From: Carpediemonas membranifera BICM
Lineage: Eukaryota > Protista > Fornicata
Direction of reading: 5' to 3'
DNA: 64,000 nucleotides
Assembly: GCA_019828565.1 (NCBI GenBank)
Contig: JAHDYR010000015.1
Span: forward strand, 175,926-239,925
A program made the position numbers and the translations under genes. Each line of letters opens with the position of its first letter. Within the stretch, counting starts at the first letter, position 1. This document shows positions 8,145 to 50,020 of the stretch, piece by piece. The notes beneath the pieces are model-generated. The model did not search any database and was not told the DNA's origin. It saw nothing but the letters and a program-made list of their open reading frames with translations.

Positions 8145-8192
8145 CATACTGTTAGAATGGCCAGTTAATCCGGGGATATACGGAGGATAAAC
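8145..8192 (+). repeat. Left TIR, 48 bp
   Basis: CATACTGTTAGAATGGCCAGTTAATCCGGGGATATACGGAGGATAAAC, the exact reverse complement of 49973-50020. Confidence 0.95.
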
Positions 8193-8416
8193 ACCCTTTT
8201 GCACAAGAAACTGCAAGAAAAAATGAGATTCACCCGTATCTTTTTCACTATTTCACACGTTTCACCAACGTTGGTGAAACGTAGAGAAACGTGCGGAAGG
8301 TACGGGTAAGTCTCATTTTTGCTTGCATACGACGTGCTAGGGGCATTCTTGTGATTCGTAGGTAGGTGCTGATGTTGCATAACCATTCATTGCTTATTCA
8401 AAGTGATAATAACGTG

Positions 8417-8644
8417 TTAGTGGTCTTTAAGTTGCTGTATTACATCTATAAACATATCTCCTATCTCTTCCAGAACGTGTTGTGTGTCATTCAGCCTCTC
8501 ATTCACCAAACCCTCGCAATTCAGCCCAGTGATGTGATTTCGTATTTCTCGAACAGAATCTTGTATCTTGCCGACTTCATGGAGGCAACTGGTCATATGA
8601 TTAAGCCTTTCGTTCGTGGATAACCGGAACATTGACGTCAACAC
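8417..8644 (-). CDS. Small helical cargo protein (start uncertain)
   Basis: Syntenic homolog at 60735-60959 (TS.L.EV.K.QDS...NDT...L.EI.D.FID.IQ). Confidence 0.65.
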   Translation of the reverse strand: MLTSMFRLSTNERLNHMTSCLHEVGKIQDSVREIRNHITGLNCEGLVNERLNDTQHVLEEIGDMFIDVIQQLKDH

Positions 8645-8666
8645 CTGCGCAGTTTAAGATGAGAAT

Positions 8667-9884
8667 ATGACGACCAGTGAAACTGCGAAGAAAGCTGAGA
8701 TTTCGCAGGGCACGTCTTGCGGATCGGATAAGAGAACAGAGTACCGCCGGCTGTTCGTGACTAGCTTCCTGGAATGCTTTTTCGACGTCGCGGACATCCC
8801 AACTATCGGTCTGACGACCTCTGACGTTCATCGCGCTCTCCTTGGCATGCAGGATGTGATATCGGGCCTCTGCAACGGCTTTCGCAAGATTGCTATTGCA
8901 AACTCCGTCAGGCGCACGACTACTGAGCCCATTCAGGCATTTGTGGCAAGTAGAAAGGGTGGCACAGAGCTCATTGGCACAAAGATACCCTACCTGGTTG
9001 TCAGAGACAGAGCAAATGCAGCTGAACACTTGCAGGAGTTTAGAAACAGGATGTCTGTGCTGTTTCGGGGACTTGGACTCCACGATGTCTCCAGTCTGAT
9101 CACTTGCACCGGCATTCAATGGCCTCCATCCGTTGTAATCAGGATCAAGCATCGCAAGCTCCAGCCTGAGCCACGTACCCCAGCAGAAACACCCGCAGAG
9201 ACACCCACAAAGACTCCAGTGACAACATTGGTACCAAAGCTCAGAAAAAGAGCTGACTTGGCTACCATCAAGCCTGATTCCCCCGTCAAGAAGCTTAATT
9301 TTGATGCGCAGATGCATGAGCCTGCTCAGAAGCGATCGAGGCTCGAAGAGGCTGACTTGAAGGAGGTTGCCGCGATGGTGACGGCTTCACTCTCCACAAC
9401 TGTCACTGATCTCCTCAAGCAGTCACCCAAGGCCGTTGAAATGAACGATAAGGTCCCCGCCCTCAAGCAAGCGACGTTTCTGAAGCTATATCAGCGTAAG
9501 TTACTGTTCGCATGCGCTGTTTGTGCTTCACCTGAATGGTACTTCAACCCAAACATGAAAAGAAACGAGTATGAAACGTGCTATCTCTGCCATCAGTTCA
9601 TGCATCTTCAGTGTGTCAGAGAGAAGAGGATTGATGGTAAGAACAGAAAGGTTTGCGCAGCTTGCAGTCTGGCAGGAAGGTCTAACAGATGTCACGCGTG
9701 TATCAAGGACGGAGACAAGTCGACAAAGGACACTGGCGTCTGCCGGGCGTGCCTAAACTGGTTCTGCGAAGAGAAACACTTCAGCTATGCTGAGTTCCAT
9801 CTCGACGGCCAGGACTATCGTGTCAGGGTTCTGCGACCAGTGTATGACTGTCTACCAGAAGGTGGCGGATATGAAGCCAATTGA
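8667..9884 (+). CDS. 405-aa protein with C-terminal Cys-rich PHD-like zinc fingers
   Basis: CAVC..PEWYFNP...CYLCHQFMHLQC...CAAC (C4HC3-like), then CHAC...CRACLNWFC; homolog at 61056-62279. Confidence 0.8.
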   Translation: MTTSETAKKAEISQGTSCGSDKRTEYRRLFVTSFLECFFDVADIPTIGLTTSDVHRALLGMQDVISGLCNGFRKIAIANSVRRTTTEPIQAFVASRKGGTELIGTKIPYLVVRDRANAAEHLQEFRNRMSVLFRGLGLHDVSSLITCTGIQWPPSVVIRIKHRKLQPEPRTPAETPAETPTKTPVTTLVPKLRKRADLATIKPDSPVKKLNFDAQMHEPAQKRSRLEEADLKEVAAMVTASLSTTVTDLLKQSPKAVEMNDKVPALKQATFLKLYQRKLLFACAVCASPEWYFNPNMKRNEYETCYLCHQFMHLQCVREKRIDGKNRKVCAACSLAGRSNRCHACIKDGDKSTKDTGVCRACLNWFCEEKHFSYAEFHLDGQDYRVRVLRPVYDCLPEGGGYEAN

Positions 9885-9911
9885 GTAAGTTAAATAGGGA
9901 GATTTTGAACT

Positions 9912-10937
9912 TTAAGTGTCTTCCAGTGCCGCTCTGTGCGCAACTGTCATCTCAGTAATGTAGCGCGAGGCCATAACATCCGCCGGAGATCTCTGCAGTG
10001 GTCTATATGCAAGTACCTCAGAAACAAGGTCGACCATCTCGGGAAGAGGGATTGGCGTGCGGAACTGAGTGGCTGTGAGGATCTCAATCGCGCCCGGGGT
10101 TATGGACATTGATCCATTCGCGATAACCCGTCTCCCTGCTGTGCCAGGTGCGAGCCCATAGCCGGAGAAGTAACGCGAGACGAAGTGGAGCGGGTTGTCC
10201 ATGCATGTAGTGCGGTAGAGCCAAAAGCAGTCCTGCAGGACGAGTTCGTTGGCAAGCATTTTCTCCGGAGTGAGAATGATGCACGTATGCTCGTATGCCT
10301 GGGTCGAAATGGACTGCTTAAGCAGAGAGAACTCGCTATTGTCCGCTCCGGTACAGGTGGCGAAGTAGATGAGCCGAACCCGGCTGGTGGTGACGAGGGA
10401 TGGCTCACGGAAAGCGAAGAGGATCATCTGTACGATATCGTGAAGGTACAGGAACTCGTTAGCGCTCGCATTAACGATCATTCTCGACGTTGTGGTCTCG
10501 CTGTGGCCAGAAACAACCCAGAATGTCTCGAAATTGGCGAATTCTGCAGCCAACTGTTGCAGTATGGAGCCGAGGTGGGTCGTCGAGACGAAACTGACGG
10601 CAACCGTGGTGAGCCACTCGTCGCTGACGAGATCGAGGATGGCCTTCATGCGCTTGTGGTACCCCTCGGAGCCAGCAAGCCCGGTGACAGTGAAGACCGG
10701 GTTCGCACAAGTAGGTGCTTCGAAGCCATGGACTGGCTCGAGCAGGATAACGATGCGGCGGTTCACAAGCTTGCTCAGGGTGAAGGGGCAGTCATGCGTG
10801 GACCTGATTCCGTCATATTCCTTCAGGCCCTGGTTGCGAAGGTCAGAACGCGGCCTAGTGATTCCACAGACGCATTCATACGTGAGAGGATGGTCGCTGA
10901 TGCGTCTGGTACCGAATTTGCCAAATTTCCTCTCCAT
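9912..10937 (-). CDS. CHAT/caspase-like (clan CD) cysteine protease, about 341 aa
   Basis: Hydrophobic strand then His (FWVVSGHS) and hydrophobic strand then Cys (RLIYFATCTG), the clan CD dyad pattern; C-terminal homolog at 62323-62700. Confidence 0.6.
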   Translation of the reverse strand: MERKFGKFGTRRISDHPLTYECVCGITRPRSDLRNQGLKEYDGIRSTHDCPFTLSKLVNRRIVILLEPVHGFEAPTCANPVFTVTGLAGSEGYHKRMKAILDLVSDEWLTTVAVSFVSTTHLGSILQQLAAEFANFETFWVVSGHSETTTSRMIVNASANEFLYLHDIVQMILFAFREPSLVTTSRVRLIYFATCTGADNSEFSLLKQSISTQAYEHTCIILTPEKMLANELVLQDCFWLYRTTCMDNPLHFVSRYFSGYGLAPGTAGRRVIANGSMSITPGAIEILTATQFRTPIPLPEMVDLVSEVLAYRPLQRSPADVMASRYITEMTVAHRAALEDT

Positions 10938-11124: not shown

Positions 11125-11934
11125 ATGGCGAGAAGAAAGGCGCTCCCACCAAAGCCGCAGCCTGGGGGTATCAGAATACCCATTACGTCCACTGCGGGCA
11201 AGACGCCGCCGTCTGCGCCTTCAAATGATTCTCAGGAGGGTTCCTCAAGCGAAGATTCCATCATTGAATCCGTTGTGCATACTCAGGCACTGCATCCGGA
11301 TCTGGTCGCCGCGATCTACCCAAACACTCCCGAGGAGTCGATCAGGGGAGCTTAAGGAGGCCGAGAAGGACCTTCCTCCCCTCGAACCCCCGAGTTGGTT
11401 ATCCACCCGGCTGACCCACCCCTCCATTGCCGTTGAGGTGCAGCCTTGTCTGGCTCCCGACCACACGGACGTGGGTAGAGGCCTCATTGCAACTGCCGCA
11501 ATTGAGCCCGGAAAGCTCCTCGGCATTTACGCCGGTAGGATTGTGTCCGACGAGGACTACCACGCGAATAACAGCAACATGGTGTTTGTTCATTGTTCAT
11601 TATGCCTTTACACAGCATTTCATTCGACGCTAGCAACATTTACGTCGACGCCGGCGAAGGTGAAGGCATTGGTGTACACCTCATCAACCACAGTGAGAGT
11701 GACACCAATTGCCAGTTCACCAACCGTTTGCTCAAGGACCTTCCAGTCCTTGCGGTTGAGTCGACGAACGTCATTCAGGCCGAAGAGTTTCTTCGTATCA
11801 GTTACGGCGAGATCTTCTTTGATGCGGGTGAGGTCTTGACCATTGCTAGGTTCCCGAGTCTGCCCATTTCTCATCTGAACTATCTCACAAGGTTCCTGGA
11901 GCAGTATCCGGCACTCAAGAAGCGGAAGAAATGA
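11125..11934 (+). CDS. SET-domain lysine methyltransferase; 32-nt intron at 11584-11615; +1 frameshift in a G run near 11347
   Basis: GRGLIATAAI.PG.LLGIYAG, LINHS..TNC, EFLRISYG; splicing GTTTG...ACACAG joins the frames (MV|ISFDAS). Confidence 0.85.
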
Positions 11935-11959
11935 ATTAAAATGTCAAAGCATCTCTTTT

Positions 11960-14900
11960 TTACTCGGGAACTCCACGCTTAACGTCCTCGGCATCAACAA
12001 CTCTCTTTTCGCGATCCTTATCGACTGCCTTGCGCTTGATATAAGTCGTATGAGCCTTTCTCTTACCACCCTTTGAACGTTTGCGGACAAATAGCGTCGC
12101 ATGCTCATCCTTGACGACCACAATAGCTTGCGCCGCAGCCACATCTTCATCAGATCCACGCCGGACCATGCCGGACTCATAAACTTCCGTCAAATGCATC
12201 CGCACAATATACTTGTCATGGTACGTCAACATCTTGACCCAGATAACGACTACAGTCTTGCTCTTCAGAGCTGACCAGGCCATGACACCAAAGTTGCTGT
12301 ACCAATCAGTGGCATCGTCGAACATCAGGGTGGGCACGAACACGTTAGACGTCTCAAGCCTCAGCCTCTCGCCAGCATCGGAGAATCCCCAGGCGCGCAC
12401 CTCCTCCCTCACTGCTGCCACTTCCTCTGCCGCAAACTTCTTGTCGAACTCGCCATTCTCAACCTTCTGCAGGCAGTAGCCGATGCACAATCCATCCGGG
12501 TTGACTGCAATCTTCCGCCAACTCTTACGATCTTTGAGAACTCGCTCGCCTACCTTGTCGTACTCCACGTCGATGTACTTCTGCCTATCAACGTCGCTCC
12601 GTAAGTATATCTGCATAGGGGGAACATTGGCAGGCGTCGGAGAGTGCTTGTGGTGAACGTAGGATTCACAGGGGAGCTGAACTGATTTATAAACTGCACT
12701 GACTTGATCACTACACTGCCCCCACGGCCCGGAGCCAAAGGTGAGGACAGGACATGATAATGAAGAGAGAGTCAGGGCAAAACCGAAGCGGACCGTGACT
12801 TGGAGGTTGGTGTGCCACGTGCTTTTGGTCAATAGTGAAGTCGAACGTCGTTGCTGAGAACGCTGATGTCGAACAAAGATGGGGAATGTAAGAGTGTCGA
12901 GATGTGGTCAGGAAGAGCGTGGACGTTGGCAAGGCCGATCGTCAGGTGCGCCAAAGCGGCATGCACCTGACAGCACTGCCCCCACGGCCCGAATCTCGAG
13001 GGTCGTACTCTAATAGGAAGGATGCATGACGCCGCTGATGTTGTAGCGTCGGTACTGGTGTGGCTACATGAGTCGCGTCTGTCGTCGAGACTTTGTCGCG
13101 TGTTAGTATGCCGGGAGCGTGGGCTGATATATACCCACAGCATGATAGGTGGCATTGGTACCGGGTGAGGTGAGAGGAGAAGTTGCCGCCCGTCACGAGG
13201 AAAATATGCCGAAGGTTGGCTACGCTAGAGTTGATTGATGACGTCGAGTCACTTGCAAAACGAGTCTAGCGATGGGTGGTGAGCTAGGTGCGAGAGCCAT
13301 GGAGAGGGCTCCTGGCCCAGTTAAGACTTGTCAGCCGGCACCATAAGGGAAGAGCGCTCGTGGAGGGACGTACTGTCGACCGACCCGACGTTTGAACCTG
13401 ATCTGGGGCTCAGTGTCGAAGCTGGTCTGGTCAAGAGACATGTTGTCAAGCCTTCGCAAGAGTGAAGCTCGGGTCTTGGGCACGGATGTAGCGCGCGGCC
13501 AAGAGCTGAAGGGGCGCGAGGAACCGGGGCGTATTGTCGCCAGCGTGCAGCTGTCTGTGTTGCGATGTCACCCAGTTGTTGCGCGATAGATGACCCGGCT
13601 GGACCCGCGCGGTGTAGACTCGGCTCATGAAGAGCGCTACTGGGAGTCGTACGCGACAGAGGTCAGTGGGCGCGGTCGGCTGATGTATGCCGAGGCTGCT
13701 GATTTCACGGATGGTCGCCGGGACCGTAACCCGAGGTAAAGCAAGCCAGTGATAATAGAGAAGGAACGTGCGGACTGTCCAAGAGCAGGCGGTTGACTGC
13801 CGCGTGTCGTCGAGACACATGAGCGTACAGTGTATAGATTCTGCCAAGATATAGGAGCGCTATGTCGCACATGTATGTTCTAAGGAAGCCGCTGAGGCCG
13901 CCGTAAGGTTGCTGTGTCCGCGGATAGCCGTTCAGACTATTGCTCCACGGGGTACAACGGTGGGGTGTCCTGATGTAAGGAGCAGAGGAGTACCGAATGT
14001 GTCATGGTGGTTGCACCCAGCCGTACAGGCTGCTGAAAGTTGAGCTTGGTACTCTGAGGATGTATAGGCAGGAGCTGTCCTGACGTCGAGTCAGTGTCGT
14101 GACGTCCTAGCCTTTGTGAACGTTGGGTGAGGTTATAGAGGCGGATCTGCGACGAGCAGGCCTCAAAACCCAGTCGTTCGTGTGAAATTGTGGCCTGGAT
14201 ATGGAGATATGGAAAATATCTCGACAGATATGATAGATCTGGAAGTTCGAGCATGTATGTTGTGACGCTGGGCTATCCCGGCTTACTCTGGAGAAAAGAT
14301 ATAAAAAGGCGAATCTAGATGCCGATGAATCTAGTTGGCGGAGATATAGTGCCGATCAGTCATAAAGAGTGGGTGTGCCCGAACGCTGCTGGGACTGGAG
14401 CGTCCGTGGGGCCCATGAATAACTTGAGGGTCAATTGAATGACTCACTCAGATGAGACCTCTAACCCATGGTCAGGGTCGCGGGCGTGGACGTGAACCAG
14501 TTGGTGAAGCCGCAGCTTGATCGTCTGGCTCGGTAATGGTGGAATAACTCGTCGAAGGCGAAAAGTAGAAATTACCGTGCGTGTGGAGTAGCGGAGCGCG
14601 GAAGACGGAAGAAAGCGCTGAGGAATGCACGAACTAATTAAATGGAACCCGAATTGCGCAGGTATTCGCTAAGGGATACTGGCTGAAGGGAAAAAGACTG
14701 AAGAAGTCTATCTTTGAGGAAACCGAGCTGGAAAATAGCTCCAAGGAGACAGAACTTGCTTCTGTAATGCTCCCAAAGCGTCGCTGCATACTTATTGGCA
14801 ATCGTAGGGAAGTATCAGCAATTGTAGGTGCGGCGCTAGGTGCTCTGACCTAAAACTGCGGAAAAGTAGACACGGTCCGACAGTCAAGGAGTGGGTCGTA

Positions 14901-16915
14901 TGAGGTGTGTGCTACCGCATTGCTGACGAATTTCGGTCGGATGGACCGGTCTCCGAGGTGAATGTGGCGTGGAAGCCTTGGCCGTTGATTCTCAGGATGT
15001 AGCCATGGAAGACTTGCCTCTGTAAGCCTAGACTAGTGTGTGCGGCCATTCTGATGATGATGGTATGAGGACTTAGTGGTTCGGAGACGATACGGACTCG
15101 TTGTGCAACAAGGAATTCTGAACAGCTGCTTCTGCCGAATTACAGTAGCATCGTTGATGCTAGCCCAATAGGCCTTGTCAGTTACCTACAACGAGGCATC
15201 TAGTTGTGTTCAAGTTGCAATTGGACACTTCTAGACGGGAAATTTCCGCAAACGCAATTAGAACGGCAGATACGTGTGATTTCCTATCCAAATTCCGTAA
15301 GAAAGCTCTACGTCAGTTGTTAACCCCTGAACACGCGCGCTTAGGAGTAATATTACTGTGGTGAACGTAGGATTCACAGGGGAGCTGAACTGATTTATAA
15401 ACTGCACTGACTTGATCACTACAGTGCTGTTTGATGATAGCCTTCATCTCTGGCGACAGACCGAGGTCGAGGGGTGGGACCGTTATGAACTTCTGGCCCC
15501 CGTACCTCATCATGGTGCTATTGATCAGAGTCCATAAGGCTCCAGTCACATTGTTCCTCTGGAACAGTACCATCAAGGCAGCGAGAGGAACGTAGCGGTC
15601 AAGCTCCACTGTTGCCTCCTCGGCGCGCCTGACAAGCTCAGCCCAGTTGTCCTCGAGTTCATCGGCGAGCGCTTCAAGCCCAGCCTCACTCGCGCGTGCC
15701 AACTCTGCTTGAGTAAGCTGATGGATCGCCTGATCCTCGGCCTTCTGCTGACCTAACTCAGCTTCAAGTCTCTTCTGGGACTCCTCAGACTCTCTGTTAG
15801 CCTGTTCAAGCGCCTCCCTCGCCTCCCGCTCCTCAGCAAGCCGTTTCATCAAGGGCTCGTACTGCTCCAACAAGCGCACAGACTCGGGTACATCATCAAG
15901 GCCTGCACTGGTGTCGTCTAGCTGCTGAAGGAGAGAACCAATGGTGTCTGTGTCGTCCACATCGGACTCTACGTCGACGTCTTGATCAGACTGGGGCAAA
16001 GGAACGCCGTCACCCTGCATGGCGGCCGGTTCAGAGTGGCCATCGGACTCGGACTCGTCAGTGTCGGAAAATTCATCGTGTGTCGTGGACTCTGCGTCGA
16101 CAACCGGAAGCGGCTGAGGGGCAGCAACGACTGCAGAAGGCTTGGTGGCTGCTGCTGAGTGGTTCTGGGCCCGGACTAACTCCTCTTGGACCTTCATCAG
16201 AGCAGCAGTCGATGAGGCGAGCTCCTTCTCAAGACGAGCGATCTTCCTCTTCAGAGGAGCTGACGGATCGAGCGAACCGATCTTAGCCAACTCCTCGGCC
16301 AGCTTCTCTGAGCCAGCGAAGGACAGCTTCTTGCTGAGCTGGGCGTGGGCGATAAACTGGCCAAATTGGCCTGCCGGAACACGAGAATCGAGTTTCTTCG
16401 AGTCCTTGTGGCGCAACACAAGGTGGAATGCGCGGTAAATCTCAACCTGCTTCTCAACAGGGAGCGAGTCGACGCCGACTAGAGCCTTATGAACAGATTT
16501 GGCGGTGAAGTGGTCACAAAACTTCCGTCGGAATGCCTCAATTGTGTCGGGAGAGTCAAAGTCGACCTCGCAGAGGTAGTTGCGGTTAGTTGCGTCACAT
16601 ATCGCGCGTAGTTTGGCAACTCCATAGTCGTGAACGTGCTGGCTTAAAGTGCGCTTCAACGGGAACCCGAAAACAACGTTGATCGTACGAATGCTGATCA
16701 GACGGACGCAAACGAAGAACAGAGGGTCATCAGAGACGATGCCGTGATCTTGCAGCCAGGTTATACGGCTCTTTGTGGACGAAAGGGCGTCGTATGCACG
16801 GAATGAATCATCTGTGTAAATAGGACCGTGAAAATGAAAGTGACACACCAGAATCGTCAGGAGCAAGCATTGTCTCCTTCAGTTTGCCGAGAGAGATGAT
16901 GTCTTCGTTAACCAT
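11960..16915 (-). pseudogene. About 712-aa protein with acidic/coiled-coil region and C-terminal OTU-like cysteine protease, interrupted by an LTR element; 37-nt intron at 16812-16848
   Basis: Removing 12649-15423 plus one TSD joins IIKQH|SPTPANVPP in frame. OTU-like motifs: VNPDGLCIGYC, DWYSN, VVVKDEHATL. Confidence 0.7.
12649..15423 (-). mobile_element. Non-autonomous LTR element, 2775 bp, with decayed interior
   Basis: Identical 67-bp LTRs (12649-12715, 15357-15423), 5-bp TSD GTGCT, PPT at 12716-12725, palindrome GTAATATTAC at 15347-15356, no long ORF. Confidence 0.92.
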
Positions 16916-17269: not shown

Positions 17270-17594
17270 GGGCGCACGGTTTCATCCTGACGTGGAGATC
17301 GATGGTGGTGAAAATGAAGAATTGACTAGGAGAGCTCTACGCTTGCATGCAGCCTTCTATTAGGTTGTTGATGTTGGTTATATGCTTCTTTTTCGTTCTC
17401 GATGCGTGTGGATGAGTATTCTGTTGCAAGATTCATTTTGATGGACTGATATTGGTTATAGAGGATAAAGGCACCAGAATGGATCATATGCATGCTATAA
17501 ACCCGTTCTGTGCCGTTGGAATACCATAGCTGCGCAGCAATGTCGAGAGTCACAGTTCATTTCACATTTTCACACGCATTTTAAGGAAACAACG

Positions 17595-18356
17595 ATGGCA
17601 AGAAGTAAACAAGGCAATATACAGGCCACTGAAGCTCAAAAGGAGAGGAGAATGGCTCTTGGCAAGAAAGCGCAGCAAAAGAGCCAGAGCAAGTCCAACA
17701 AGTCCACGAAAACAGCCCGAAAAGCTCACAAGACGCCCATCGAGATCGTTCAGACCTTTATCAGCAATTTCCTCACTAATAATGACGATATTACCCGCGC
17801 AAACGGATGGGTTGTCGACTTCAGCCAGAAGTTTGCCGCCGAGGTCCCTAAGATGAAAGTAGCCTCCTTGAAGAAGGACAAGCTCTACGGCAATCTCCAG
17901 TCGGTCGAAGAGATCAGCCGCAAGTGGCAGGGAGGCGGTGATGAGGACAAGCGTCACCGCTTCAAGGCTCTCCTCAGTCTTGACGCCCAGACAGATGAGC
18001 TGGACACGGACGACCCACTCATCGCGACTGTCCGCGAGATGGATGATGCCTTTCACCGCATTCCCATCGCCTACCGGGCTAAGGTCCATGCCTTCGCTGC
18101 TTCATCGTGCGGTGTGACGGTCGATGACGTCAAGCTCGTCCTGAGCAAGCCTTGCCGTGACCGCGACGCGGATATCATCTTCGCCAGACCCACCAGAGTT
18201 CTGAAGAAGGAGGCTAAGACACTCAGTCAGCTCACTTCTGTCATTGCCAAGCGGAATGCGGAACGTGCTGAGGCTGAATCGCGTGATGTGCTGCGTCGCA
18301 AGGTATACCAAGCCATCATGAATTACTACTTAGAGTGTTCGGCACAGGAGCTATAA
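17595..18356 (+). CDS. 253-aa Lys-rich hypothetical cargo protein
   Basis: Clean ORF with basic N-terminus, TTTCAC motifs upstream, convergent stop next to the GNAT gene. Confidence 0.7.
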   Translation: MARSKQGNIQATEAQKERRMALGKKAQQKSQSKSNKSTKTARKAHKTPIEIVQTFISNFLTNNDDITRANGWVVDFSQKFAAEVPKMKVASLKKDKLYGNLQSVEEISRKWQGGGDEDKRHRFKALLSLDAQTDELDTDDPLIATVREMDDAFHRIPIAYRAKVHAFAASSCGVTVDDVKLVLSKPCRDRDADIIFARPTRVLKKEAKTLSQLTSVIAKRNAERAEAESRDVLRRKVYQAIMNYYLECSAQEL

Positions 18357-18380: not shown

Positions 18381-19306
18381 TTACACTTCTTCGTCATCCT
18401 CAACGGAAATATTCCATTCACTGTCCCAGAAGTTGGCTTTCTTCTCCTTACGCATCTCGGCCCTCGTTTCCTTGATCTCTTTGACCAGCGTGAAAGAACG
18501 AAGGTTGTAATGGCGGATAATCATCAACTTCTGCCTGATTCGGGTGACGTTAGGCCGTTTTGCCGCACGTTCACGGCGCACGGACACACGGGTGCGTTCC
18601 ACGAACGAGTCAACACTCCTCTTGTCGGAAGCAGGCATCCCATGAGCGTGCTGATCAAGTCTATTACCATGGTTGGTCACGCGGATCAACGTAGAGCCTT
18701 GCATTATCATCCCACAGCACTCTGTCAGGCTCTTGCCGAGGTTGGTCCACTTGTTGGGACCCATCGTGCCCTCCATCGTGACAATGGCAAGTGGGTTGCC
18801 CCCCGTGTCCACCAGCTGCTCGACCTGCGACGGGTCCGATGACTCCTTGAGGCCAAAGGACGCATACATGTCCTGGAGTCGCTTGTCGCACTGCAGTCGG
18901 ACGAGTTCTTCGGCAGATGCTATGCTAAGAAGCACCCTCGCGAACCCAAGACCTCTGCAGGAGACGGCTGTCCGTAAGCCGATGACAAACCGCTCCTGGT
19001 GCAGTTGTCCGCTCAGGGTCTGCCCCTCCCTGTACGACTCGCGGAAGAGAAGGCATGCAGCCTTGATGTTGTCCATCTCAACCCCACGAATTGCGATGAG
19101 ACTGTGTTAACAAGAAGTGTAGTGGGTCTGACATACATGACGAATGAGTAGTTCAGACAGTCGAGGTTCGAAGTCGCCAGATCTCTGTTGAAGAAGGCCC
19201 TGACAGACGGCAAGAGCTCAGACTTGTCTGAAAGCTTGACATATTGAATATAGGCCTTGTGTTGCGATAAATTCATCGTCAGCCATGTCGGAAGTGGCGT
19301 TTCCAT
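18381..19306 (-). CDS. GNAT-family acetyltransferase; 35-nt intron at 19102-19136
   Basis: Motif A LRTAVSCRGLGFARVLL and motif B LQDMYASFGLKE; intron GTATGT...TAACACAG joins YSFVI|LIAIRGVEMDN in frame. Confidence 0.72.
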
Positions 19307-19430
19307 TGTTTTTCACCAAACAAGTGACGTAATGTGAAAATTGTGAAACTACCAATGTTGAAAAAGAAATTTGGTAGTTGGGGGAAACACACCAAATGGG
19401 ATGTACTGACCAATAAAACTCCTTTACTCA

Positions 19431-26011: not shown

Positions 26012-26086
26012 TGTGCCGTGTTACGAATGAGTTTTATGCAACCAACTCCCGCAGTTTAGGGTCACACTTCCCCCCATGCGGACGCA

Positions 26087-36150: not shown

Positions 36151-36278
36151 TTTAGTGCTCCATCACCTGATCACACCATAGCCTTGTGGCGTTGCACGTT
36201 GGCCTTTCCGAGCAGGGGCGGGGAGGTGTGGCCTATTGCCTGAGATGCGGGGTCGGTTGCGAACCTTGTAGCCATAAT

Positions 36279-37863: not shown

Positions 37864-38173
37864 GTACGAAGACAGGGTGAGGAGGGTGTTGATTTCCGTG
37901 TGCGGTTGCGGCACGTTGGAAGGGACGGGAGTCTGCTGGAGGGCGGAAGAACCTTGCGTCGTGAATGCGCTGGGAGATCAGGTCCGCCTCCTCCATCTCG
38001 CGGACGAGCTGGCAGAATTGCTCGCGCTGAGGTCTTGTTCTGGCGGAGTTGAGGCCAATTCCGACCATGGCGAAGTAGGTACAGCCAAGAAGGTAATTCA
38101 TGCGCTCAACTGAGCGTGGCTGGTCATCATATATTGTACCGATGTGGCTCTCGAACACAATATGAGCAACCAT
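37864..38173 (-). pseudogene. N-terminus of the RAG1/Transib-like transposase, separated by the LINE insertion
   Basis: MVAHIVFESH...HPPHPVFV joins in frame across the TSD to RDDYRTHAIQERAVQDYND. Confidence 0.75.
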
Positions 38174-40224: not shown

Positions 40225-43200
40225 TTACCCATCTTTTCGGAGGTTCAGAAGGGCACGTCTGCCGTTCTGCAGTCCCTCTCTGACGGTATGGTCCTCGCTG
40301 CGGAGGAGCCAGAGCATTTCCAGGATTGCCCTTGAGTTGTACCACTCCGCCTCCTGCCCTTGCCTTAGGGCGTGGTACTGTGTGCGTAGATGCGCCTCCG
40401 CCAGGATGTCATTCCATCCTTCTGGGCGTTCTACCGCCTTGCATTGGCAGATGATGTGGCTTTGTGTTCCCAGGGGCTGGTTGTATGCCCATTCTGAGAG
40501 GATTTTGGTGGTTTCCGCCGCGGTTCTGGTGACAGTGTACAGGCGAGTAATGGTGTCACCTTCTGAGTCCAGGGTACATAGGGGGCAACACCGCTTGATC
40601 CTGCTCAGGAGGGCCTGGGGCTGGCCGATCGCGCTCCCAAGTATGGCTCTGCTTCTGCCACTGTTGCTGGGGGAGGGGAGTGTGTTGGATGCAGTCATGA
40701 TTACTCTCTTGACTTCCCGTCTGGTTATCATCTCACCCTTGATCATTCCTGGTTTCTTGGGTCTCTTCCCTTGCTGCATGCTGAGGATGACTTCCGGGGC
40801 TAGTACTGTTGCCACCCCTTTGGCCGTTCGGCTCCCGGTGTGCAGTAGTTCTTCTGCTGTGAGGGTCCAGCCTCCCCTCTTTGCTCTTTCCCTGGCGGGC
40901 ATCTCCTCCTGTGTGCCCTGGAGGACGCTCCGTCGCCATTGGTAGAGGCGATGTAAGACCGATCCTCTCTCCGCTGTCGCCCAGTCCAGATTCCCTAGGG
41001 GGGTCGGACGGTCCGGGTCGTGCGCAGACTCATAGAGCCTCACCGCTCTCTGCCCCATATCTGCCTCCCAGCACATCCATCCCATTAGTACACGGGCGGC
41101 TCCTCCTCCCCCTGGTCCTGTGCCTGCCATTAGGCCGCGCCAGTTGTTCCAGATGGCTCTTCCCCTGGCGCTTGGCCCCAGATCTCGATCCCGAACTCGA
41201 TCTTGGGCCAGAGGAAGGTTCTGAGGATGGATTCCGAGGTGGCGGCCGGGGTGGATCCTTTGGTCCACCCTGCTCTCCTTGCCAGGGCTAGGTATTTCCG
41301 GGATTGTGACGTCTTCATTTTGATGCATGCTGCCAACGGATTCTTCCCGCTGGCTAGCCAGAGTCCCAGATACCTTGCTGAGTCTGACGCCAGTGTGGGA
41401 GTTCCTTGGATGCTGACCGCTGCAGTTACGTCGGTACTTATCACCACACTTTTGCCTGGGCTGGTCTGGAGTCCATGGGCTTCAATTACCCTGACCACTG
41501 CGTCTGTGCCTTCTTCGGCGAGCTGCGGGGTCTCGGCTGAGATGCTTGTATCATCTACAAACATTGCAATGAGGCAGTTTTTGGGCCTATCGTCCGTTGG
41601 AGGGAGGCAGGGGTCCGGGATCTCTCTATGCCGGAGGTACAGTGCCGCCTGGCTTAGCCAGTTAGCTGTGAAGAGAATGAACAGAGTGGGGGCCACCACA
41701 CATCCTTGCTTGACCCCCATGTTTGTTCTGGACCATGTGCTTGCCCCTCGTACCGAGATGTACGTTTCTGTAAGTGTATTTCGGATGGCCCTCGTCAGTC
41801 TTGGGTGTACCCCCATGAGCGTCAACTTGTTCACCAGCAGGTCCCTTGGGACCGTATCATATGCTTTTGCTATGTCAAGTAGGACGCTGGTACGGTTTCC
41901 GGACTGGTGGAGTTGGGCTAGGAGGGCTATGTGATCCACTACAGTTTTCCCTTTCATGAACCCAACTTGCTCTCTGGGGATGAACTTCTCCACCGTCGGC
42001 CTGAGGCGCCATTTCAGTATCCTCCCGTAGGCTCTGTATAGGAGGGGGGTGAGGGAGATCGGTCTGTACGAGCTGGGCGTGAGCTTGTCCTTCCCAACCT
42101 TGTGGATAGGCGACACCGCTGCATACTTCCATGTGGTTGGCATGGTCCCGCTGTCGTATACTTTCGCGAGCAGGACTGTGATTGCCTCGTACGCTGACTC
42201 GGGGAGGTCCCTCAGACAATCTCCAATAATCCCGTCCGGGCCTCCGGCCGAGGACTTCCTTATGGACTTGACCGCCGCTGTCACTTCTTCAAGCGATGGC
42301 GGATGGTCCTCCATGTCCGTTTCCGGCTCGGTTTCCCAGGTGGGTTCCCAGGTGGGTTCCTTCCCGGAGCTTACCTTCGCGTACTGCTCCTGGAGGGAGT
42401 CTGCAATCTCCCTCTGCCTTGCTAGAATCTTGTTTCCAGCCTTCAGCATCACCGGGGAGACCGGCGTGCTGCTTCTCGTTCCAGAAGCGGAACACTTGGT
42501 TTGCGAGGATCCTTTTTGTCGTTTTGTACCCATCACGGGATCCAACCTCAACCTGCTCATTCCAGTCATGTTGGAAGGTCCTCCATGATCTGCTCAGTGC
42601 TCCGTTGAGGGACTTTTTGATATCTTTGGCGGCGGTTTTGCTCCAGGTGGAGGCTTTGGCCAGCCGTTCCCATACCTCACTAGGGATACGTTCCTGGTTT
42701 TCTACAGCGAATGGGTGCCTTCTGGAGGTAGCAAACCCGGTGGACAACCATTTCCTTATGAGAGTCTCCATCTCGTCCACTGGTATTTTTGCTGTCTAGT
42801 GGTGGCCACTCTTCTAGCTTGGGCCCTGTTCTCCTGGGTTTGACCAGCCACGTATCGATCCGTGGGATTTCCAGTCTCTTTGATATCTCTGGTTTCCCTG
42901 TCGGGTTGCTATCCCAGGTGAGCTCTATGGCTTTGTGTGCCGACCCCCAGTGCCCGATTGTGGTCTTGTCTATTACCCTAACAACCGGGTTTTGGATACC
43001 CCCTGTTACCGCTGCATAGTCTATTGTGGACGTTCGGGGAGTTAGTCCCGTACGTCGGTGCAGTTGGTGCTATTGGGGTGAGGTTCCATCGCTGGAGGGT
43101 CATCGCAGTTGCTTGCCTGAGTTTCCCTGGCCTCCTGTTCCAGTCCCCGATGATGATGATGTCACACCCCTCATAGTTCGCGACGGTTTGCTCTAGCATC

Positions 43201-43598
43201 CGGTCGAACTCCTCAATCTCGGGTCGTGCACATCCACTATCGGGAGCGTAGATATTGATGACTGCCGTGGCCCTCGATGCTTTGAGGATGCTTACTTGGA
43301 TTCGTGGGTTCGTCCCGTCGGACACGCCTACGTCCCATTCCGCTTTGGAGTGCGGGCTAATCAGTGTGGCCAGTCCCTTTGTGGGTCGCTTGCGCGTTGC
43401 CTCTAATGGCTTGACCTCTCCTGCACAGGCGTACTGGAGATCTACCCAGCAAGGGATGGTGGTATTACCGTACCGCTTGGTTTCCTGGAGGAGGATCGCA
43501 TCAGTCCTTATCCTCTTGCGGATGGATAAAGCTATGGATCCGCTGTAATCGTTTGCGCCCGCTAGGTGCCCTTCGCTGTTTAGCGATATTATTCTCAT
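40225..43598 (-). pseudogene. LINE family 2 ORF2 (APE-RT-CCHC), frameshifted
   Basis: LLQET, INIYAP, IGDWN; YRPISLT, QVGF, LDIAKAYDTV, GVKQG, AMFVDD, RYLG; CPLC...SHIICQC. Confidence 0.9.
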
Positions 43599-44213
43599 TC
43601 AGGTTGTTCTGACATAAACTGCGGGAGTTACCCTGCGCGCACTAAGTAGACATTCCCTTTTTGGGCGTACCTTTTGGTGGGTTGCTGAGGCCTCTAACCG
43701 AGCAGTCGTTTCCTTTTGGGCAGGCTTGTGCCTGTATTCCCTTAGTTCCCGGCCTAGGGCATACCATTCCCTTTCACAGTCGGGGCCTCACGATGCTTGT
43801 CGGCATTGCTGCCGGTCTCCGCTTAGCTTCCTTCCTCGCCGCATGGCAGGACCATTACCTAACGAGCTTAGGTGGGAGCGACAGTGGTTGTTGCCCCTCC
43901 CAAGGCTGGAGTTACAGCCTGCCGGACAGGCAGGGCTCTTTTTACCTTTTGGTAACCCTGCCCCCGGCCCCTGTGGGGCACAGGGGGTTTGTTGAAAAAG
44001 AATGTGTTGCATTTTTGCTCCCGCCGGAATGGTTCGCCGGTGTCCATTTGGACTTTAAGGCCCTACTAGTCACAGCCTGGCCATACTTGCTGGTTCATAT
44101 ATACACTTTTAGCTCAGACTTATATCACACTACCCTCTCCACCTCTTACTTATGATTGTTTCTACTCACCTTCCTTCTCCTCGCCTCTCTTCCTTCTCAG
44201 GTCAGACCTGAAG

Positions 44214-47200
44214 TTATCCATCTTGGCTGCTAGGGGTGAAGCTGAGGGCTTCGTTGGTCGCCGAGAGTCGGGCCGCGCGGCTGAGTAAGTCCTCGTTCTC
44301 TTCGGTTAGAGACGAGCACTTCTCCGTTGTCTTCCTGAGGTCCTTCCGCATCTCGTCCAACGCAGCTTGGGCTGCTCTCCGGGCTTCCCGTTCTTCCTCC
44401 AGCTCCTGGCTTTTGGCCTTGAGCTCGTTGATGGTTCTGGCTGCAGCTTCTTCCAGCTGTTGTCTGACCTCTGCTTCTCGCCGGGCCATGGCTTGGTCCA
44501 GCAGGGCCGCTATGCCTCTGCCCAGGTCGGTGTCCTCCTGTCGTGCTCTTTTTGGGCTGCAGGTCCTCTTGGTCCACCTGTCTGACCTGGCGGGTCTTGG
44601 CTGATGGGTTGGGGGTATGGGGGGGGGGCACAGCTCTTAGTTGGAGGGGGCCCGGGCTCTGTTCGCTCTGTCCTGCTACTTTGCGGTTGTTCAGTGACAA
44701 TTTGCCCGCGTGGAGGGCCATATAGGCCCCCTATGCCGCCATTCGGCAGGTAGACCTCCGTCCTCCTGTGGAGCATCTTGGCGAGTTCAGTAGCCCTTCG
44801 TCTCACCTTTGTTCGAAGCGCCTGCTTCCTCTCGGTCCTCAGTCTGTTCTTGGCGTTAGTGCTGGCGCCTTCCGGGAAAACACAGTTCAGCGTGTCCCAT
44901 GGCTTCCCCCCTTTTGGGTGTTCCACGCCTGAGCCCGCCAGGGCGAGTTTGCCTATCCAGGAGGCGCTCCTCAAGGTGCCCACTCGCCTCTTTCCTCTTT
45001 CTGCTGGTTCATCCGTGATACCCCAGTCCCGGGGGGAGGAACGAGGGGAGGAAGTTGATGGAGCCTGTCTCCGGGTCGACACACATGTTGGCCAGGAGTT
45101 CTCGATCGTCGGCTGGGACCTCCGTGAAGTAGTTGAAGATCTTCTTCCTGGCTTCTCTGCCCATGTGGCCTCCAGCTATGTCGAATTTGTGGACGGGCAT
45201 CAAAGACGCCGCTTGGGATAGGGTCATCGTTTTGGTGTCGCTGACGTCTAGAGTAAGCATCTTTTCCGCGTCTATTTCCGTGGGCTCCCCCTCAGGTTCG
45301 CCCAAGGGGAAACCGTCGTGGCGGCGCCCGTTCCACTCCGAGTGGATTTCCAGGAGGATGGGTCGCGCTGGTTCGCCTACTCTCGCGAGCGATTCTGGGT
45401 TTCCGATGATCACGGCTGTTCCTTCCAGGGCTCTGGTGATACCCTTTCCGGAGCTGAAATCGTTTTCCTCCCAGTTGGTCATGATAATCTGGCCCCGTTT
45501 GGGGTTCTTGGTGCCAAAGAGGTTGACTTGTTGGGACAATGGGGTTAGGCGACCGGCCGCCACGGTGCCGAGGCCGTGTCTGGCGTTGACTTTGGTCGCC
45601 AGGTCCTTGTATTCATCATGGTACGGCGACTCCCTGCCCATGAGCATGCTTCCTAGGGCTGTGAGGCGGGCTTCTACCTGCCCCCAGTCCCAGCCTGGGT
45701 TGTCTCTCATCCAGAACGCTGTTGCTAGTCTGGCGTAGAATATGGAGACATCTGCTAGGGCGCAGTGGCAGTGGTGGGGTGCGTGCTTGTGATAGGGGCA
45801 CACCAATTTTGCCTCCGGGCGCTGTTGGTACCTTCTGGTCCAGGTCCGGCCCAGTTCGGACTGGGGTCGGGAGGGGAGGCCGGTGAGGCTCTTCTCCCCA
45901 CTATTGGGGTAGAACCAGGTCAGCGTGTCGAGGATGTTGGGGAAGATCGTGTTGAGGTCAGTTTCATCCATGAGGCGTAAGCTTAGCCAGGTGCGGAGGT
46001 TCCCGTCTGGGACGAACTTCTCACTGGTCAGGATGCTTCTCTCAGCCTCGACTCCCTTAGCCACGATGTGGACGTGGGTCTTCTGTGGCCCCGAGTCGTC
46101 TTCCAGTCTCTTCAGCTCTGTAGCCATCTCGGTGCACCATCGCTTGGCGTGGGGGAAGTCTGCTTCGTATCCCTTGGGGGCTTTGCCCGTGGTGACGTCG
46201 ACAAACGTAGCTGGTGGGCATCCATGGATGTAGTGCGTGGCCCACAGACATTGGTCCAGGGCATCCACTGTGATGTCTTCCCCAAGCATCCCGTGCATGT
46301 AGTAGAGGATTTGCTCGTTAGCTGGGTCGAAAATCAGTGCCGCCCCTTCGCAAATGATGGCCTCGTCTCCTTGGTTGGATCTGGCTCTTCCTTCCTCAAA
46401 GTCCACCATAGCGATCAACTGCCTGGTGGTGTTGGCTCGTTGGGTGATATTGGAACGAGGCGGGCTAGCTCCCATGCTGGGCCCGCATGTGCCCTTGTTT
46501 GGCGTGGTGGGTGTGTCATCAGGGCCGGAAGTCCTGCTGCCGCTCGGGCCCAGGGGGGTTTCTTCTTCGTTAGTACCCAGGGCTCCATGAGATGCCCCGT
46601 CCCGTACGGGCTCTATAACTTGGGTCTGCCCCGTTGTGAGCCAGTAGTTAGTGATGTTGCGCGTCAGAAAGGAGGCAGACACCAGTTCGCGGGCAATCCT
46701 CGCGGGTGGGGGCCAGAGACGCCTGGTCTTATCCCATGCCGACCAGAGTTCGGGGAAGCCGGGGACTGACCACCGTTGGATGAGGTCTCTGACCTCCTCC
46801 CTCAGGTCTGCCTCTGCTGCCGAAGGCTCTTCTTCCAGGGGTGGGGGTGGGAAGACTGGCCTCATCACACCCTCGGTTCTGCTGTAGATGAGGATCTCCT
46901 CGACGGGGCCCTGGGTCCAGATCTGGATGGGCGTGCCGTCTGGTCTGCGGGAAACCTCCCTCCGGGGGGTGAGGGGCGTGGTAGCCTTGCCCTTTGGCTA
47001 GTTCCCGGCCTAGGTCGGCCCAGAGCTTCTTGTTTTCGCGTCCTAGTGAGGGGAGCCCTCTGGCTGCAGCTCCCGCGGAGATGGCGTGTCCGGCGGCATG
47101 GAGGAGCCACATTGCAGCCTCCATCCCGTACTTGGTCTGGATGCCGTTGCCTGAGATCGAAGAATGTCCTGCAGCTTGCAGCGATGTTGCCACGAGCTCT

Positions 47201-48008
47201 AGGAGGAGCGTCCTTGCGACCTTTCCCGTTCGGGCAGTGAAGTCCGTTGCGTCATCTCTGGTGAAGACCATGGCAACGTCCCTTGTGGGAATAGCCGCAT
47301 CTGCTGAGGCTCTGATGCAGTCCCATTCGTCCGGTGTGGCCAGTTGCTTGCCCAGTGGCGTTAACGACTCCTTGATCCCATTTGGGGGTGGTGTTTGCGC
47401 AATCCAAGGCGTCTGGGACGCTTTGGGAGCTGTTCGAGGTCATTGTGTGGCGTGGTCTCGAAAAGTCCCGGTTATGGATTCGGCCGAGATCAAGGCCCTC
47501 CTCCACGGGGAGAAGTGATGGGGGTGTGTTGATCACTAGCTGGTGCCGTCTGGCTCGTCCGGTGGGGATGTGCTACGTACTTGGAGTAGTCCGCCTGGAC
47601 TCTGGGGTAGAACACAAATTTGGGGGACCCTGGGCGAAGCCGGCTTAGTGTCTCCGCCTGCTCTAGGTCCAGCCGGTTCCCTTCAATGAATAGCCAGTAT
47701 GGCTGTTGGGCGGCTTTTGTGTACCGTCTCAGGAGGGGAAGTGATGCAAACAGCTTCTTGGCCCGGCTTTTCCGGAGCTCCCCTGGGCCTTCCTTTGCTG
47801 TAAAGCTTCCCTATTCTGGGTCTACAATCTTGTCGTATCCTATCGCGTTGCCGAGCTGGATAATGGACGTATTTGCTTTTTCCCTTCTGGTTTTCCTGAG
47901 ATCCCTTCTGGGTGCAGCCTTAAGGGCGAATAAGCCATAAATCATGCTTTCTTCCCTATCTGGCATGTCCCTGTTGGGATATTCCCCTGTTTCCATTTGG
48001 AGTGGCAA
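44214..48008 (-). pseudogene. LINE family 2 ORF1 region with DEDDh/Maelstrom-like nuclease (about 45740-46420) and C-terminal coiled coil
   Basis: The 619-aa piece at 45009-46868 contains MVDFEE..IICEGA..MHG..YIHGCP..KGVEAE..CPYH..CHCALAD. Confidence 0.72.
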
Positions 48009-48189
48009 AAGGCGGGAAGTGCACTTTTGCCAGCTTCTTGGAGGGGCTTGAGGAGGTTTGGTGGAGGTTCCAAGGGGCGCCAGCCAGCGATGTCCTGGTC
48101 TTGTATGGCTCCTTTCCCTTCCTCAGGGCGGATGGTTCAGGGGCGAGGTATGCGAGGTTTGTTGCGGACCTTGTTTCCACACAAAAACA

Positions 48190-48920
48190 TGTCTGGCGAA
48201 AACCCAAAAGGGAACCTTATTGCAGGGACAGGGAGCATCGCCCCACACGGGGCTGCTGTCCCTTATTCCCCATGCGTCCGTTCCATCTCTCCTTCCACCT
48301 TCACGCCTCCTCCTGGCCATTCGGCCGGCGCCTCCGCTGCCCAGCGGTCCCCAGAGGGGGAGGTGCATTACCAGGGGTTATGCACTCCGATCCCTATCGA
48401 GTCCTTGGCCCGAGTACGGCCTGGACTCCGATTTCGGGGGCGCCGCCTCTTTCCCGGGAAGCAGGGCCCTCTTCGCACTCCGACGGGGGATCCCATATTC
48501 CCCTCCGGGCCCCAGGGTAGTCCCTTGCCTTGTGGCGGCAGGGGCTTCACCGCTCCTTCTCGGGAGTCCCCGACTCCTGGCCCGGCGACTCCTCGGGGTT
48601 GGGAGGCGCATTTCCTGCGGACCATAGCTGACGATTTTGCCCAGGTGGACGTCCTGGCCAGCCGGTGGCGGGAGCGTGCCGCTGCCTTTTCCTACCTGGC
48701 TCAGAATTACCGTGACGAGGACCTGAGTCCCCACGAGTCTAAGTCGGCTCGGGGTTTCGACGCTGAGCTGAGGGGCCAAATGCGGGTCTATAAGCGCCTT
48801 CGTGCTCGCATAGACGCCCGGCTGCACCAGCTGGTTGCCATTCACGCCCCTCGTCCTGTATCTTGTGGTCGCAGCCCGGTTGTTTCCTTCCTGGGTCGCG
48901 TCACTCCCAAGAGGTTGTGA
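48190..48920 (+). CDS. Antisense ORF of LINE family 2 (start uncertain)
   Basis: W...A.AF...DED...F...QM..Y...R...L.Q...SP.V.FLG..TP shared with the family 1 antisense ORF. Confidence 0.65.
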
Positions 48921-49972
48921 GTCCTGGTAAACACCGTGATGGTTTATGCCTTTTGGCTTCGGCTGGGCGTTTCTTGTGGGGCTGTGGACGGGGCCCTCAG
49001 CGCTCCCGGTCTGTTGTCCGGTATGGCTGGTGTACTGGGGGCCTGTTGTGGTGGCCTTGTTGCCTATGCCGGCGGCGGGCGGCGATCCCGGCTCTCGTGG
49101 CGATGACGTCCACAAGCCCGGTCTTGGGCGGCATGAGAGCACGGGCGCCGGAGTAGTGTGGCCCAGTGGCCTCCCAGTGAGAGCCTATTGGCCGCCGGTC
49201 CCGGTGCTCTCGGGTTACTTTGCCATATGGCCCCAGTTAAGTTGTCTGAGGCAATCGTGTCGCAGTGCCTCTGGGGCCTACTGCGGGTACCGGTTACGGT
49301 AGGGGTTTCAATCATAAAGGTGGCGCAGTACGCTTGTTCGCGTTGATTTCCCTTGTGGGTTTGTGCGAGGAGCGCTTAGTTGCGTCTGGTCCCCTTGTGG
49401 GTCCCAGGAGCATGGGCGGTAGGTTTTGTTTGTTGTTAGAGTACTGTGTATTCTGTCAACGCTTTCCTACCGAGGCTAACTTATTCCCTTTTGGGTGGTT
49501 TTTGCCTCTGTGCATTTTTGGGCACACGAGGACGATCATCTGTTGCTCGACATAGCTTGGCGCACGGCGAGGTATACAGGGCAGGGGAGTGGGCTCCAGG
49601 TGAGGTGGTGCGCACCTCACCTGGAGCAGCCAGTTGTCCTCTGCCGGCCCGCTCTGGCGCTAACCTGCTTCGCAACGGGCGATCTCCTCCGGGGAGCAAT
49701 TTGCTTCCCCAATGTGCCCTATGGCTAGTGGGTTAGGAGAATACTTCCCATTTCTGCTCTCGTGCCCCAGAGCAGACGAACTCTTGGTCCTGAAATTACC
49801 ATTTGGTGGATGCTGGCGCCGCGGGGCACCGTCGCTCGCTTCGAGCTCGAATAGCTTTCAATGAGATCCGATAAATCCCGATTGCCAGCTTTTGGCCTTT
49901 TTCCGGTTGGTTTCGTCAACTTCCCATACCGGACATTTCCAACTGACCCTGAAGCACGAATAAGGAATTTGC

Positions 49973-50020
49973 GTTTATCCTCCGTATATCCCCGGATTAA
50001 CTGGCCATTCTAACAGTATG
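49973..50020 (-). repeat. Right TIR, 48 bp
   Basis: Exact reverse complement of 8145-8192. Confidence 0.95.

Follow-up and report, generated by a model that had tools for sequence, protein, structure and literature searches.

Why a DNA transposon should carry seven genes besides that for its transposase, several of them encoding predicted protein-modifying enzymes, is the question raised by a locus in the anaerobic free-living protist Carpediemonas membranifera (PMC8516963). The locus, at positions 8145–50020, lies in a stretch of 64,000 nucleotides, hereafter the window, the proteins of which map to contig JAHDYR010000015.1 in assembly GCA_019828565.1; near-identical proteins from that assembly bear the name C. 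membranifera, which identifies the host. As set out below, the element is an autonomous cut-and-paste transposon with a predicted RAG1-fold transposase, apparently of an undescribed lineage of the CMCT clade, and we estimate at roughly 0.55 the probability that its cargo acts on chromatin as a kit to counter silencing.

The transposon and its transposase

The element is bounded by terminal inverted repeats (TIRs) of 48 bp at 8145–8192 (forward strand, starting with CATACTG and identical across all copies of its family, family 1) and 49973–50020 (reverse strand). As a preliminary description of this DNA had stated, the two are perfect, being 100% complementary, and are flanked by a duplicated TG (8143–8144 and 50021–50022), a 2-bp target site duplication (TSD) of a kind that was proven at other loci through empty sites. 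The same description had called the element giant, but its 41.9-kb span is due to nesting. Three TSD-bounded insertions, all on the reverse strand and foreign to the transposon, had been correctly recognized, and each of their sites is empty in five to nine other copies. Insertion 1 (12649–15423) is a non-coding 2.8-kb long terminal repeat (LTR) element with identical 67-bp LTRs and the 5-bp TSD GTGCT, and its site was unoccupied at nine other loci; a 71-bp TSD was considered here and rejected, as the repeat consists of the pair of 67-bp LTRs plus the 5-bp TSD. Insertion 2 (21680–37863) is a long interspersed nuclear element (LINE1) of ~11 kb with a 20-bp TSD, within which a short-LTR gypsy element is nested at ~26011–30876. 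Insertion 3 (39200–49946) is a second such element (LINE2) of 10.7 kb with a 14-bp TSD and a match to RVT_1 (9e-33). Subtraction of the three insertions leaves 12,131 bp, in which all eight genes are present. The window copy lies 20 bp past a gypsy LTR, where it interrupts a gag-like gene at its start codon. Excision had been said to restore a gag open reading frame (ORF), which is only partly right: read with an X placed at the break, the gag-like gene stops after 33 codons, so that excision yields no intact ORF.

At least ten family-1 loci besides that in the window, located on eight contigs, were found by look-ups with the cargo proteins. They differ from the window copy by 0.27–0.72% (99.3–99.7% identity), and the transposon has spread recently. 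A second family is represented in the window by the left part of a copy at 60583–64000 (forward strand), which sits in another gag-like ORF and comprises a TIR, the small ORF, the PHD/FYVE gene (61056–62279), a partly deleted caspase-like gene, the SET gene and the end of the OTU gene before it leaves the window. In agreement with the preliminary description, this copy keeps the gene order up to the window edge and has its SET intron at the identical codon position. Complete family-2 copies at loci L002 and L020 measure 11.3 kb and have 50-bp TIRs with TSDs GG/GG and GA/GA, while a third complete element, L015 in assembly GCA_002919055.1, has 74-bp TIRs with CATACTG ends and a transposase that is 24% identical. 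The TSD was exactly 2 bp in six of six complete copies (TG, CG, TG, GG, GA and GC), all of which end in CATACTG. Uninserted targets of L006 and L002 exist elsewhere, including in the window, and they match only when 2 bp are removed; the empty site of L004 likewise agrees with a 2-bp TSD except for a homopolymer. Longer TSDs of 3–8 bp were ruled out by the flanks of complete copies and by the empty sites. The paired copies, 2-bp duplications and empty sites that had been named as a check on the proposal were thus all found. Together these findings show cut-and-paste movement by a transposase that recognizes CATACTG-ended TIRs and integrates with a 2-bp stagger. Besides Carpediemonas, the lineage occurs in at least one more eukaryote. 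Those flanks that could be identified were mostly other mobile elements (LINEs, gypsies and a related family).

Two further observations concern the copies themselves. At L007/L008 (JAHDYR010000067.1, ~745–777 kb) left-truncated family-1 copies lie head to tail with a period of ~11.15 kb; this period and their identical right flanks indicate segmental amplification, not transposition. In addition, TTTCAC/GTGAAA repeats, clustered and often palindromic, occur at 8251–8279, 17578–17586, 19311–19342 and 38345–38380 and at the equivalent sites of family 2. Of the 14 repeats in family 1, 13 are non-coding, as are 11 of the 12 in family 2; in both families these precede the transposase and GNAT genes and lie close to the left end. 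L015 has none. They are possibly a shared promoter or binding site, or they may be a general host motif.

The window transposase gene (19431–38173, reverse strand) is split by LINE1 and carries its predicted catalytic residues at 20905–20925 (D), 20659–20679 (D) and 19851–19874 (E). Its reading frame, 846 aa long and intact in L011, is broken in the window copy at a T-run near 19873, the length of which differs among copies. A HMMER search of 1.8 billion proteins returned 19 relatives, from C. membranifera or environmental assemblies and none of them named RAG or Transib; a word-based homologue search had returned two transposases only. No match to Pfam was obtained at E ≤ 1, even with the 19 transposases (no Transposase_21, Plavaka or RAG1), and a transposase profile found no match among PDB sequences. 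Alignment revealed the motifs WxDGW, DHKA and LEExFER in the order of the RAG1 D-D-E residues, with D353, D435 and the Glu of LLEEFF conserved. An AlphaFold (AF2) model with a pLDDT of 78.6 matched RAG1 in Foldseek (E 8e-10, TM 0.42/0.49), followed by BbRAGL (4e-7) and HzTransib (3e-5), with no others below 0.01. Since RAG and Transib are the only CMCT transposases in the PDB, this fold match gives the clade, not the family. On the basis of the model, the transposase would work like those of the RAG1/Transib type.

The preliminary description had placed the element close to RAG1 and Transib. The fold bears out the likeness. Transib/RAGL and ProtoRAG also have a 7-bp conserved CA...TG terminus. 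Membership in Transib/RAGL, however, did not hold up. Transib/RAGL elements have a 5-bp TSD (PMC10629977) and a CAC-type heptamer, as opposed to 2 bp and CATACTG here; the terminal 7-mer, conserved in all families, is identical to CACAGTG at five of seven positions and differs from it at the third base, and a nonamer layout beside the CATACTG termini was not seen. They also differ in that the present transposases have no sequence-level match to them, have mostly lost the Zn ligands, and are accompanied by seven cargo genes and no RAG2-like gene. Only P0046, the most distant of the relatives, has both the C(2)C and the H(3-4)H motif intact (RCSFC; HSMLH), whereas the other transposases, that of the window included, have YPxPF/YPCPF and one or no His. 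None of the element genes gave a Kelch/RAG2-like match in sequence searches, although a PHD finger is present, and in this respect the transposon resembles RAG1-RAG2, where a RAG1-fold enzyme is accompanied by a PHD-finger protein. Because of the exact 2-bp TSD in six of six copies, the lack of a RAG2-like gene and the degenerate Zn motifs, membership of the transposon in Transib/RAGL is not supported.

The CMCT clade is defined by CA..TG ends, TSDs of 2–5 bp and C(2)C/H(3-4)H motifs (Kojima 2025; PMC12730594). With its families (EnSpm/CACTA, Mirage, Chapaev, PlavakaB, ESTA and Lanisha) the transposon shares CA..TG ends, a TSD in this range and a RAG1-like transposase (PMC12730594), whereas the cargo differs. 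EnSpm/CACTA elements, of which enlarged multi-ORF forms of 16–20 kb occur in Chondrus (PMC6431247), have CACTA/CACTG termini in place of CATAC, and no Transposase_21 match was obtained here. PlavakaB has a comparable TSD of 2–3 bp but ends in CATCA..TGATG rather than CATAC..GTATG, and its Plavaka domain was not found. The TSD of ESTA is TA-specific, in contrast to TG, CG, GG, GA and GC. In view of these mismatches in TSD and termini, neither Transib/RAGL nor EnSpm, PlavakaB or ESTA fits. The transposon is therefore apparently an undescribed CMCT-clade lineage and not a Transib, set apart from EnSpm, PlavakaB and ESTA by their descriptions.

Cargo genes and their conservation

The enzyme identities given in the preliminary description were upheld for the SET, caspase-like, GNAT and PHD genes, the OTU gene remaining a probable assignment. 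For these comparisons the SET, GNAT and coiled-coil/OTU genes were searched exon by exon. Pfam searches with single window proteins were blank for the transposase and for the caspase-like, OTU, GNAT and basic proteins. The predicted SET-domain lysine methyltransferase gene (11125–11934, forward strand) has an intron at 11584–11615 and a Pfam SET match on both exons. With a Pfam E value of 4e-11 for the family-2 copy, a profile match to EHMT1 (1e-11), and the GxG, NH(S) and terminal Tyr motifs in place, its identity as a SET protein is well supported. Likewise well supported, by structure prediction, is the caspase/CHAT fold of the putative cysteine protease at 9912–10937 (reverse strand; His in SGHS at 10500–10514, Cys in YFATC at 10353–10367). 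Its PDB sequence profile was blank and fold search alone revealed the identity: the AF2 model (pTM 0.74) gave a best Foldseek E value of 4.6e-5, and the top 50 matches were all caspase, CHAT, MALT1, C11 or Raptor caspase-like domains. G144-H145 and C195 are invariant in six diverged homologues. The GNAT acetyltransferase (18381–19306, reverse strand; intron 19102–19136; acetyl-CoA motif RGLG at 18939–18959) is a moderately supported prediction. Its homologue in the distant element L023 matches Pfam Acetyltransf_7 within the cut-offs (2.5e-7) and is related to the family-2 copy at E 2e-7 and to the window protein at 1e-3, and a profile search gave GNAT matches only. The introns at 11584–11615 and 19102–19136 are 32–35 nt long and end in ACACAG, one of them beginning with GTATGT. 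In other metamonads, too, the branch point and the 3′ splice site are fused, which these short introns resemble.

In the PHD/FYVE protein (8667–9884, forward strand), an N-terminal domain precedes two fingers, the first a C4HC3 finger of PHD type and the second FYVE-like. Profile matches in the PDB to FYVE (1e-5) and PHD (0.002–0.02) and in Pfam to PHD_4 (0.014) make the predicted PHD identity moderately supported. The coiled-coil/OTU gene (11960–16915, reverse strand), split by insertion 1 and a single 712-codon frame in the uninterrupted locus L010, encodes an N-terminal domain, a coiled coil and a C-terminal OTU-like protease. Here, the D-G-x-C motif (12485–12499), the His (12092–12106) and a W motif were present, and the G-x-C and H were invariant in six diverged copies. 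The top PDB matches (A20, nairovirus OTU, OTUD3 and EschOTU) were sub-threshold at E 0.05–0.4, and by motif and these weak matches the protein is probably an OTU. The 253-aa basic protein (17595–18356, forward strand), the N-terminus of which is basic, has homologues in L020, L015 and L019, and homology searches found no relatives outside these elements. The small helical 71-aa protein (8417–8632, reverse strand) is open in six copies, and its counterpart in family 2, also of 71 aa, is 43% identical with a dN/dS of 0.31; neither this ORF nor the basic protein had named relatives in homology searches. In the window copy, the SET and transposase genes are frameshifted at homopolymers of copy-variable length, and a 5-bp indel in the PHD/FYVE gene deletes the last Cys pair and frameshifts the C-terminus.

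That the cargo is a stable part of the element and not a recent capture, as had been proposed, was confirmed on two counts. Between families 1 and 2 the cargo order is identical and dN/dS is 0.12–0.44 for seven genes, values that are rough because synonymous sites are near saturation (fully saturated in the PHD gene). Furthermore, even branches that separate at the deepest points of the transposase tree, at ~25% transposase identity, have the cargo set again, with its gene order shuffled. L015 holds PHD, SET, basic, caspase-like and two OTU genes within its 74-bp TIRs. Cargo was assigned by adjacency at L014, L016, L019, L023 and L026, as their ends are unpaired: basic, OTU, SET and caspase-like genes at L019; two SET genes, a GNAT and a caspase-like gene at L023; and, in the Carpediemonas families L014, L016 and L026, a PHD gene, to which L014 and L016 add coiled-coil/OTU and L014 also SET. 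The catalytic residues of the cargo enzymes are retained. Every cargo homologue whose neighbourhood was examined lay beside a related transposase or inside its TIRs, and homology searches with the cargo returned only Carpediemonas hypothetical and environmental proteins; a single-copy host orthologue without TIRs was not found, while the gene set was found inside other TIRs. As judged from these comparisons, the seven extra genes are shown to be kept under apparent purifying selection, and the cargo makes up a flexible toolkit, its composition not being fixed at eight genes.

Further genes were noted near related elements. At L019, a protein kinase gene (1599–2990; Pfam 2.6e-24) lies head to head with the basic gene and has an upstream repeat in common with the transposase; since the element end was not found, the kinase may be cargo or a host gene. 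Near the family-3 transposase and SET genes of L014, two paralogous ORFs (13085–13894 and 20497–21069) have a chromodomain-like end (VKWIGF), for which Pfam and the PDB gave no support. The repeated 605-aa ORFs of L012 (11731–13548 and 19328–21145), near a family-5 transposase, have kinase-like tail motifs (HRD...N, LIDWE) and are possibly cargo.

A feature shared by two of the cargo genes is an N-terminus resembling histone H3, the tail of which reads ARTKQTARKS. The window basic protein and the basic gene of the distant locus L019 start with MARSKQ, and the SET genes start with MARRKALPPK in family 1 and MARRKM(S/P)ARKQ in family 2, with K4 and K9 in the H3 register. Over the first five residues these starts beat all 269 other ORF starts of the analysed loci, with p values of 1e-4 to 0.015 against their own shuffles. 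A 33-aa H3-like start gave no match in a PDB search. Histone mimics are known from influenza NS1 (ARSK) and from G9a/GLP (ARKT). The present starts are similar to these in being short H3-tail-like motifs on non-histone proteins, and differ in lying at the free N-terminus of transposon proteins, near the SET and PHD genes of the same element.

Neighbouring mobile elements

A third family of this transposon group is represented in the window by one of its ends, at 59588–60039 (CATACTGTGAAAG..., cf. L016 13671 and L021 5182). It lies in a Tc1/DDE_3 gene (58919–59590, Pfam 6.5e-28), giving a four-level nest in which the Tc1/DDE_3 gene contains the third family, this a gypsy, and the gypsy the family-2 copy. 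At L009 (2525–2636) there is a 112-bp fold-back miniature of family-3 ends, with GA and AG flanks and thus no clean 2-bp TSD.

LTR elements of the C. membranifera genome have very short LTRs of 57–67 bp (26011–30876 and 12649–15423; L026 17179–22101), and insertion 1, which is non-coding, has the motif GTAATATTACT immediately after the LTR in common with the gypsy that bears gag. The LINEs at 21680–37863 and 39200–49946 belong to two related families, unusually long at ~11 kb and with (TTTC)n tails; both have a large upstream ORF with a DFE-type motif resembling DEDD exonucleases, which had no match in Pfam. At 52290–55745, inside a gypsy, there is a copy of LINE1, 99.3% identical, that comprises the 3.4 kb at the 5′ end and lacks the 3′ end, the reverse of the usual LINE truncation. 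Finally, 2.5 near-identical tandem units of 1171 bp with a gypsy integrase-chromodomain segment at 3767–6716 are either a true duplication or an assembly artefact.

Possible roles of the cargo

In the explanation that we favour, the transposon would excise by a nick-hairpin reaction of the RAG/Transib type, as its predicted fold suggests, while its cargo would act on the chromatin around it. Judging from the domain identities, the PHD finger would read the state of the H3 tail, the SET and GNAT proteins would write methyl and acetyl marks, the OTU protein would strip ubiquitin off histones or the transposon's own proteins, and the caspase-fold protease may clip histone tails or silencing factors. 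The H3-like N-termini (ARSK, ARRKxxARK) could be decoys that engage the readers and writers of the host, or built-in substrates of the SET and PHD proteins that the element itself encodes. As an outcome, the transposon would stay expressed and mobile in repeat-rich chromatin, the home of most observed copies.

Several points weigh against this explanation. The chromatin role is deduced from domains, with substrate, activity and expression all putative, and SET, GNAT, OTU and caspase folds frequently act on non-histone proteins. The best SET matches (EHMT, E 1e-11) give no specificity, support for the OTU is sub-threshold, the second zinc finger looks FYVE-like, unlike a histone reader, and near-saturated synonymous sites make the dN/dS values rough. 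The mobile-element flanks of most observed copies lack a genome-wide null for insertion into repeats. With respect to the H3-like starts, which strengthen the chromatin reading but do not put it to the test, the likeness was noticed post hoc, and its null consists of ORF starts of the analysed loci, not the host proteome. Moreover, such a start is absent from the basic proteins of family 2 and L015 and from distant SETs, and in 12 of 12 assembled family-1 copies the SET start and the domain lie in different frames, the shifts falling at three separate homopolymer sites; an alternative start there gives a 225-aa SET, while the H3-like start is in frame in family 2 (L021).

The same transposon might instead use its cargo for host manipulation or self-maintenance through non-histone targets, which we regard as possible though rather unlikely. 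The OTU would then keep the transposase from being degraded, stress, cell-cycle or death pathways would be steered by the caspase-like protease together with the kinase, or a toxin/antidote pair would make loss of the element costly. Large DNA viruses and intracellular bacteria typically have comparable gene sets, and the SET matches include LegAS4, an effector of Legionella. Neither the caspase fold nor the FYVE-like finger is chromatin-specific, and a protein kinase adjoins the basic gene at L019. Yet PHD, SET and GNAT domains together with H3-like tails point to histones, and the basic C-termini of the SET and OTU proteins suggest, by their composition, nuclear import.

A virus-like integrated element, comparable to Teratorn, Polintons or virophages and with the transposase as integrase and the enzymes as viral counter-defence, would account for the compact, gene-dense layout on both strands with its shuffled gene order. 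The closest OTU matches include nairovirus OTUs, and the 71-aa ORF, the basic protein and the N-terminus of the coiled-coil/OTU gene are three regions without assignment. We consider this origin very improbable, since complete copies of 11–12 kb have no polymerase, packaging ATPase or recognizable capsid, and no relatives were found in IMG/VR viral contigs, phages or BFVD. Prokaryotic genomes likewise gave no relatives. The passive capture of host genes, as in Pack-MULEs, or a domesticated host locus is even harder to credit and has already been largely refuted. The host-type short introns and the frameshifts in the window copy would fit such an origin, but the indels are mostly homopolymer-length differences and the insertions are polymorphic, with empty sites. 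In addition, the examined cargo homologues all lie beside a transposase or within TIRs, and the set recurs at ~25% transposase identity under apparent purifying selection.

A bolder version of the counter-silencing explanation is tentative and, in our view, doubtful as a whole. It would have a new RAG1-fold lineage at the superfamily level encode a histone-code circuit (SET and GNAT as writers, OTU as eraser, a tail-clipping protease, a PHD reader and H3 mimics) that both escapes silencing and aims integration, the RAG1-fold/PHD pairing having arisen independently and in parallel to RAG1-RAG2.

Mobile carriers of chromatin- or ubiquitin-altering enzymes are known. SET genes occur in HarbingerS/MuDR elements (Phytophthora), the anti-silencing protein VANC in Vandal elements and TET/JBP in fungal transposons including KDZ (PMC12730594), while Helentrons carry OTU/SET (PMC4067079). 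The preliminary description had ascribed SET, OTU and caspase-like cargo to KDZ elements, which these papers do not confirm, as they give TET/JBP for KDZ, SET for HarbingerS/MuDR and OTU/SET for Helentrons. These transposons carry one or two such genes with unrelated transposases, whereas in the present elements a reader, two writers, an eraser, a protease and H3-like tails occur together and persist at ~25% transposase identity. In line with the earlier view that this combination is not a described family, our literature search, with Repbase outside its scope, found no description of the combined cargo set, and the paper on the C. membranifera genome makes no mention of such transposons. New is what appears to be an undescribed lineage of the CMCT clade, together with the unusual completeness of its protein-modification toolkit; transposons with a single SET or OTU gene as cargo are already known.

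Counter-silencing by transposons has so far been known from single genes (VANC, TET/JBP or a lone SET). Because near-identical recent copies exist and the L011 transposase is intact, the system is directly testable. With its 2-bp stagger, eroded Zn motifs and PHD partner, the predicted RAG1-fold transposase of a deep-branching metamonad provides a new reference point for RAG/CMCT evolution. If our explanation is true, small eukaryotic transposons can wage epigenetic conflict on the scale of viruses through a conserved multi-enzyme kit, and the elements would be both a source of highly divergent SET, GNAT, OTU and caspase enzymes and a pointer to the silencing system of C. membranifera.

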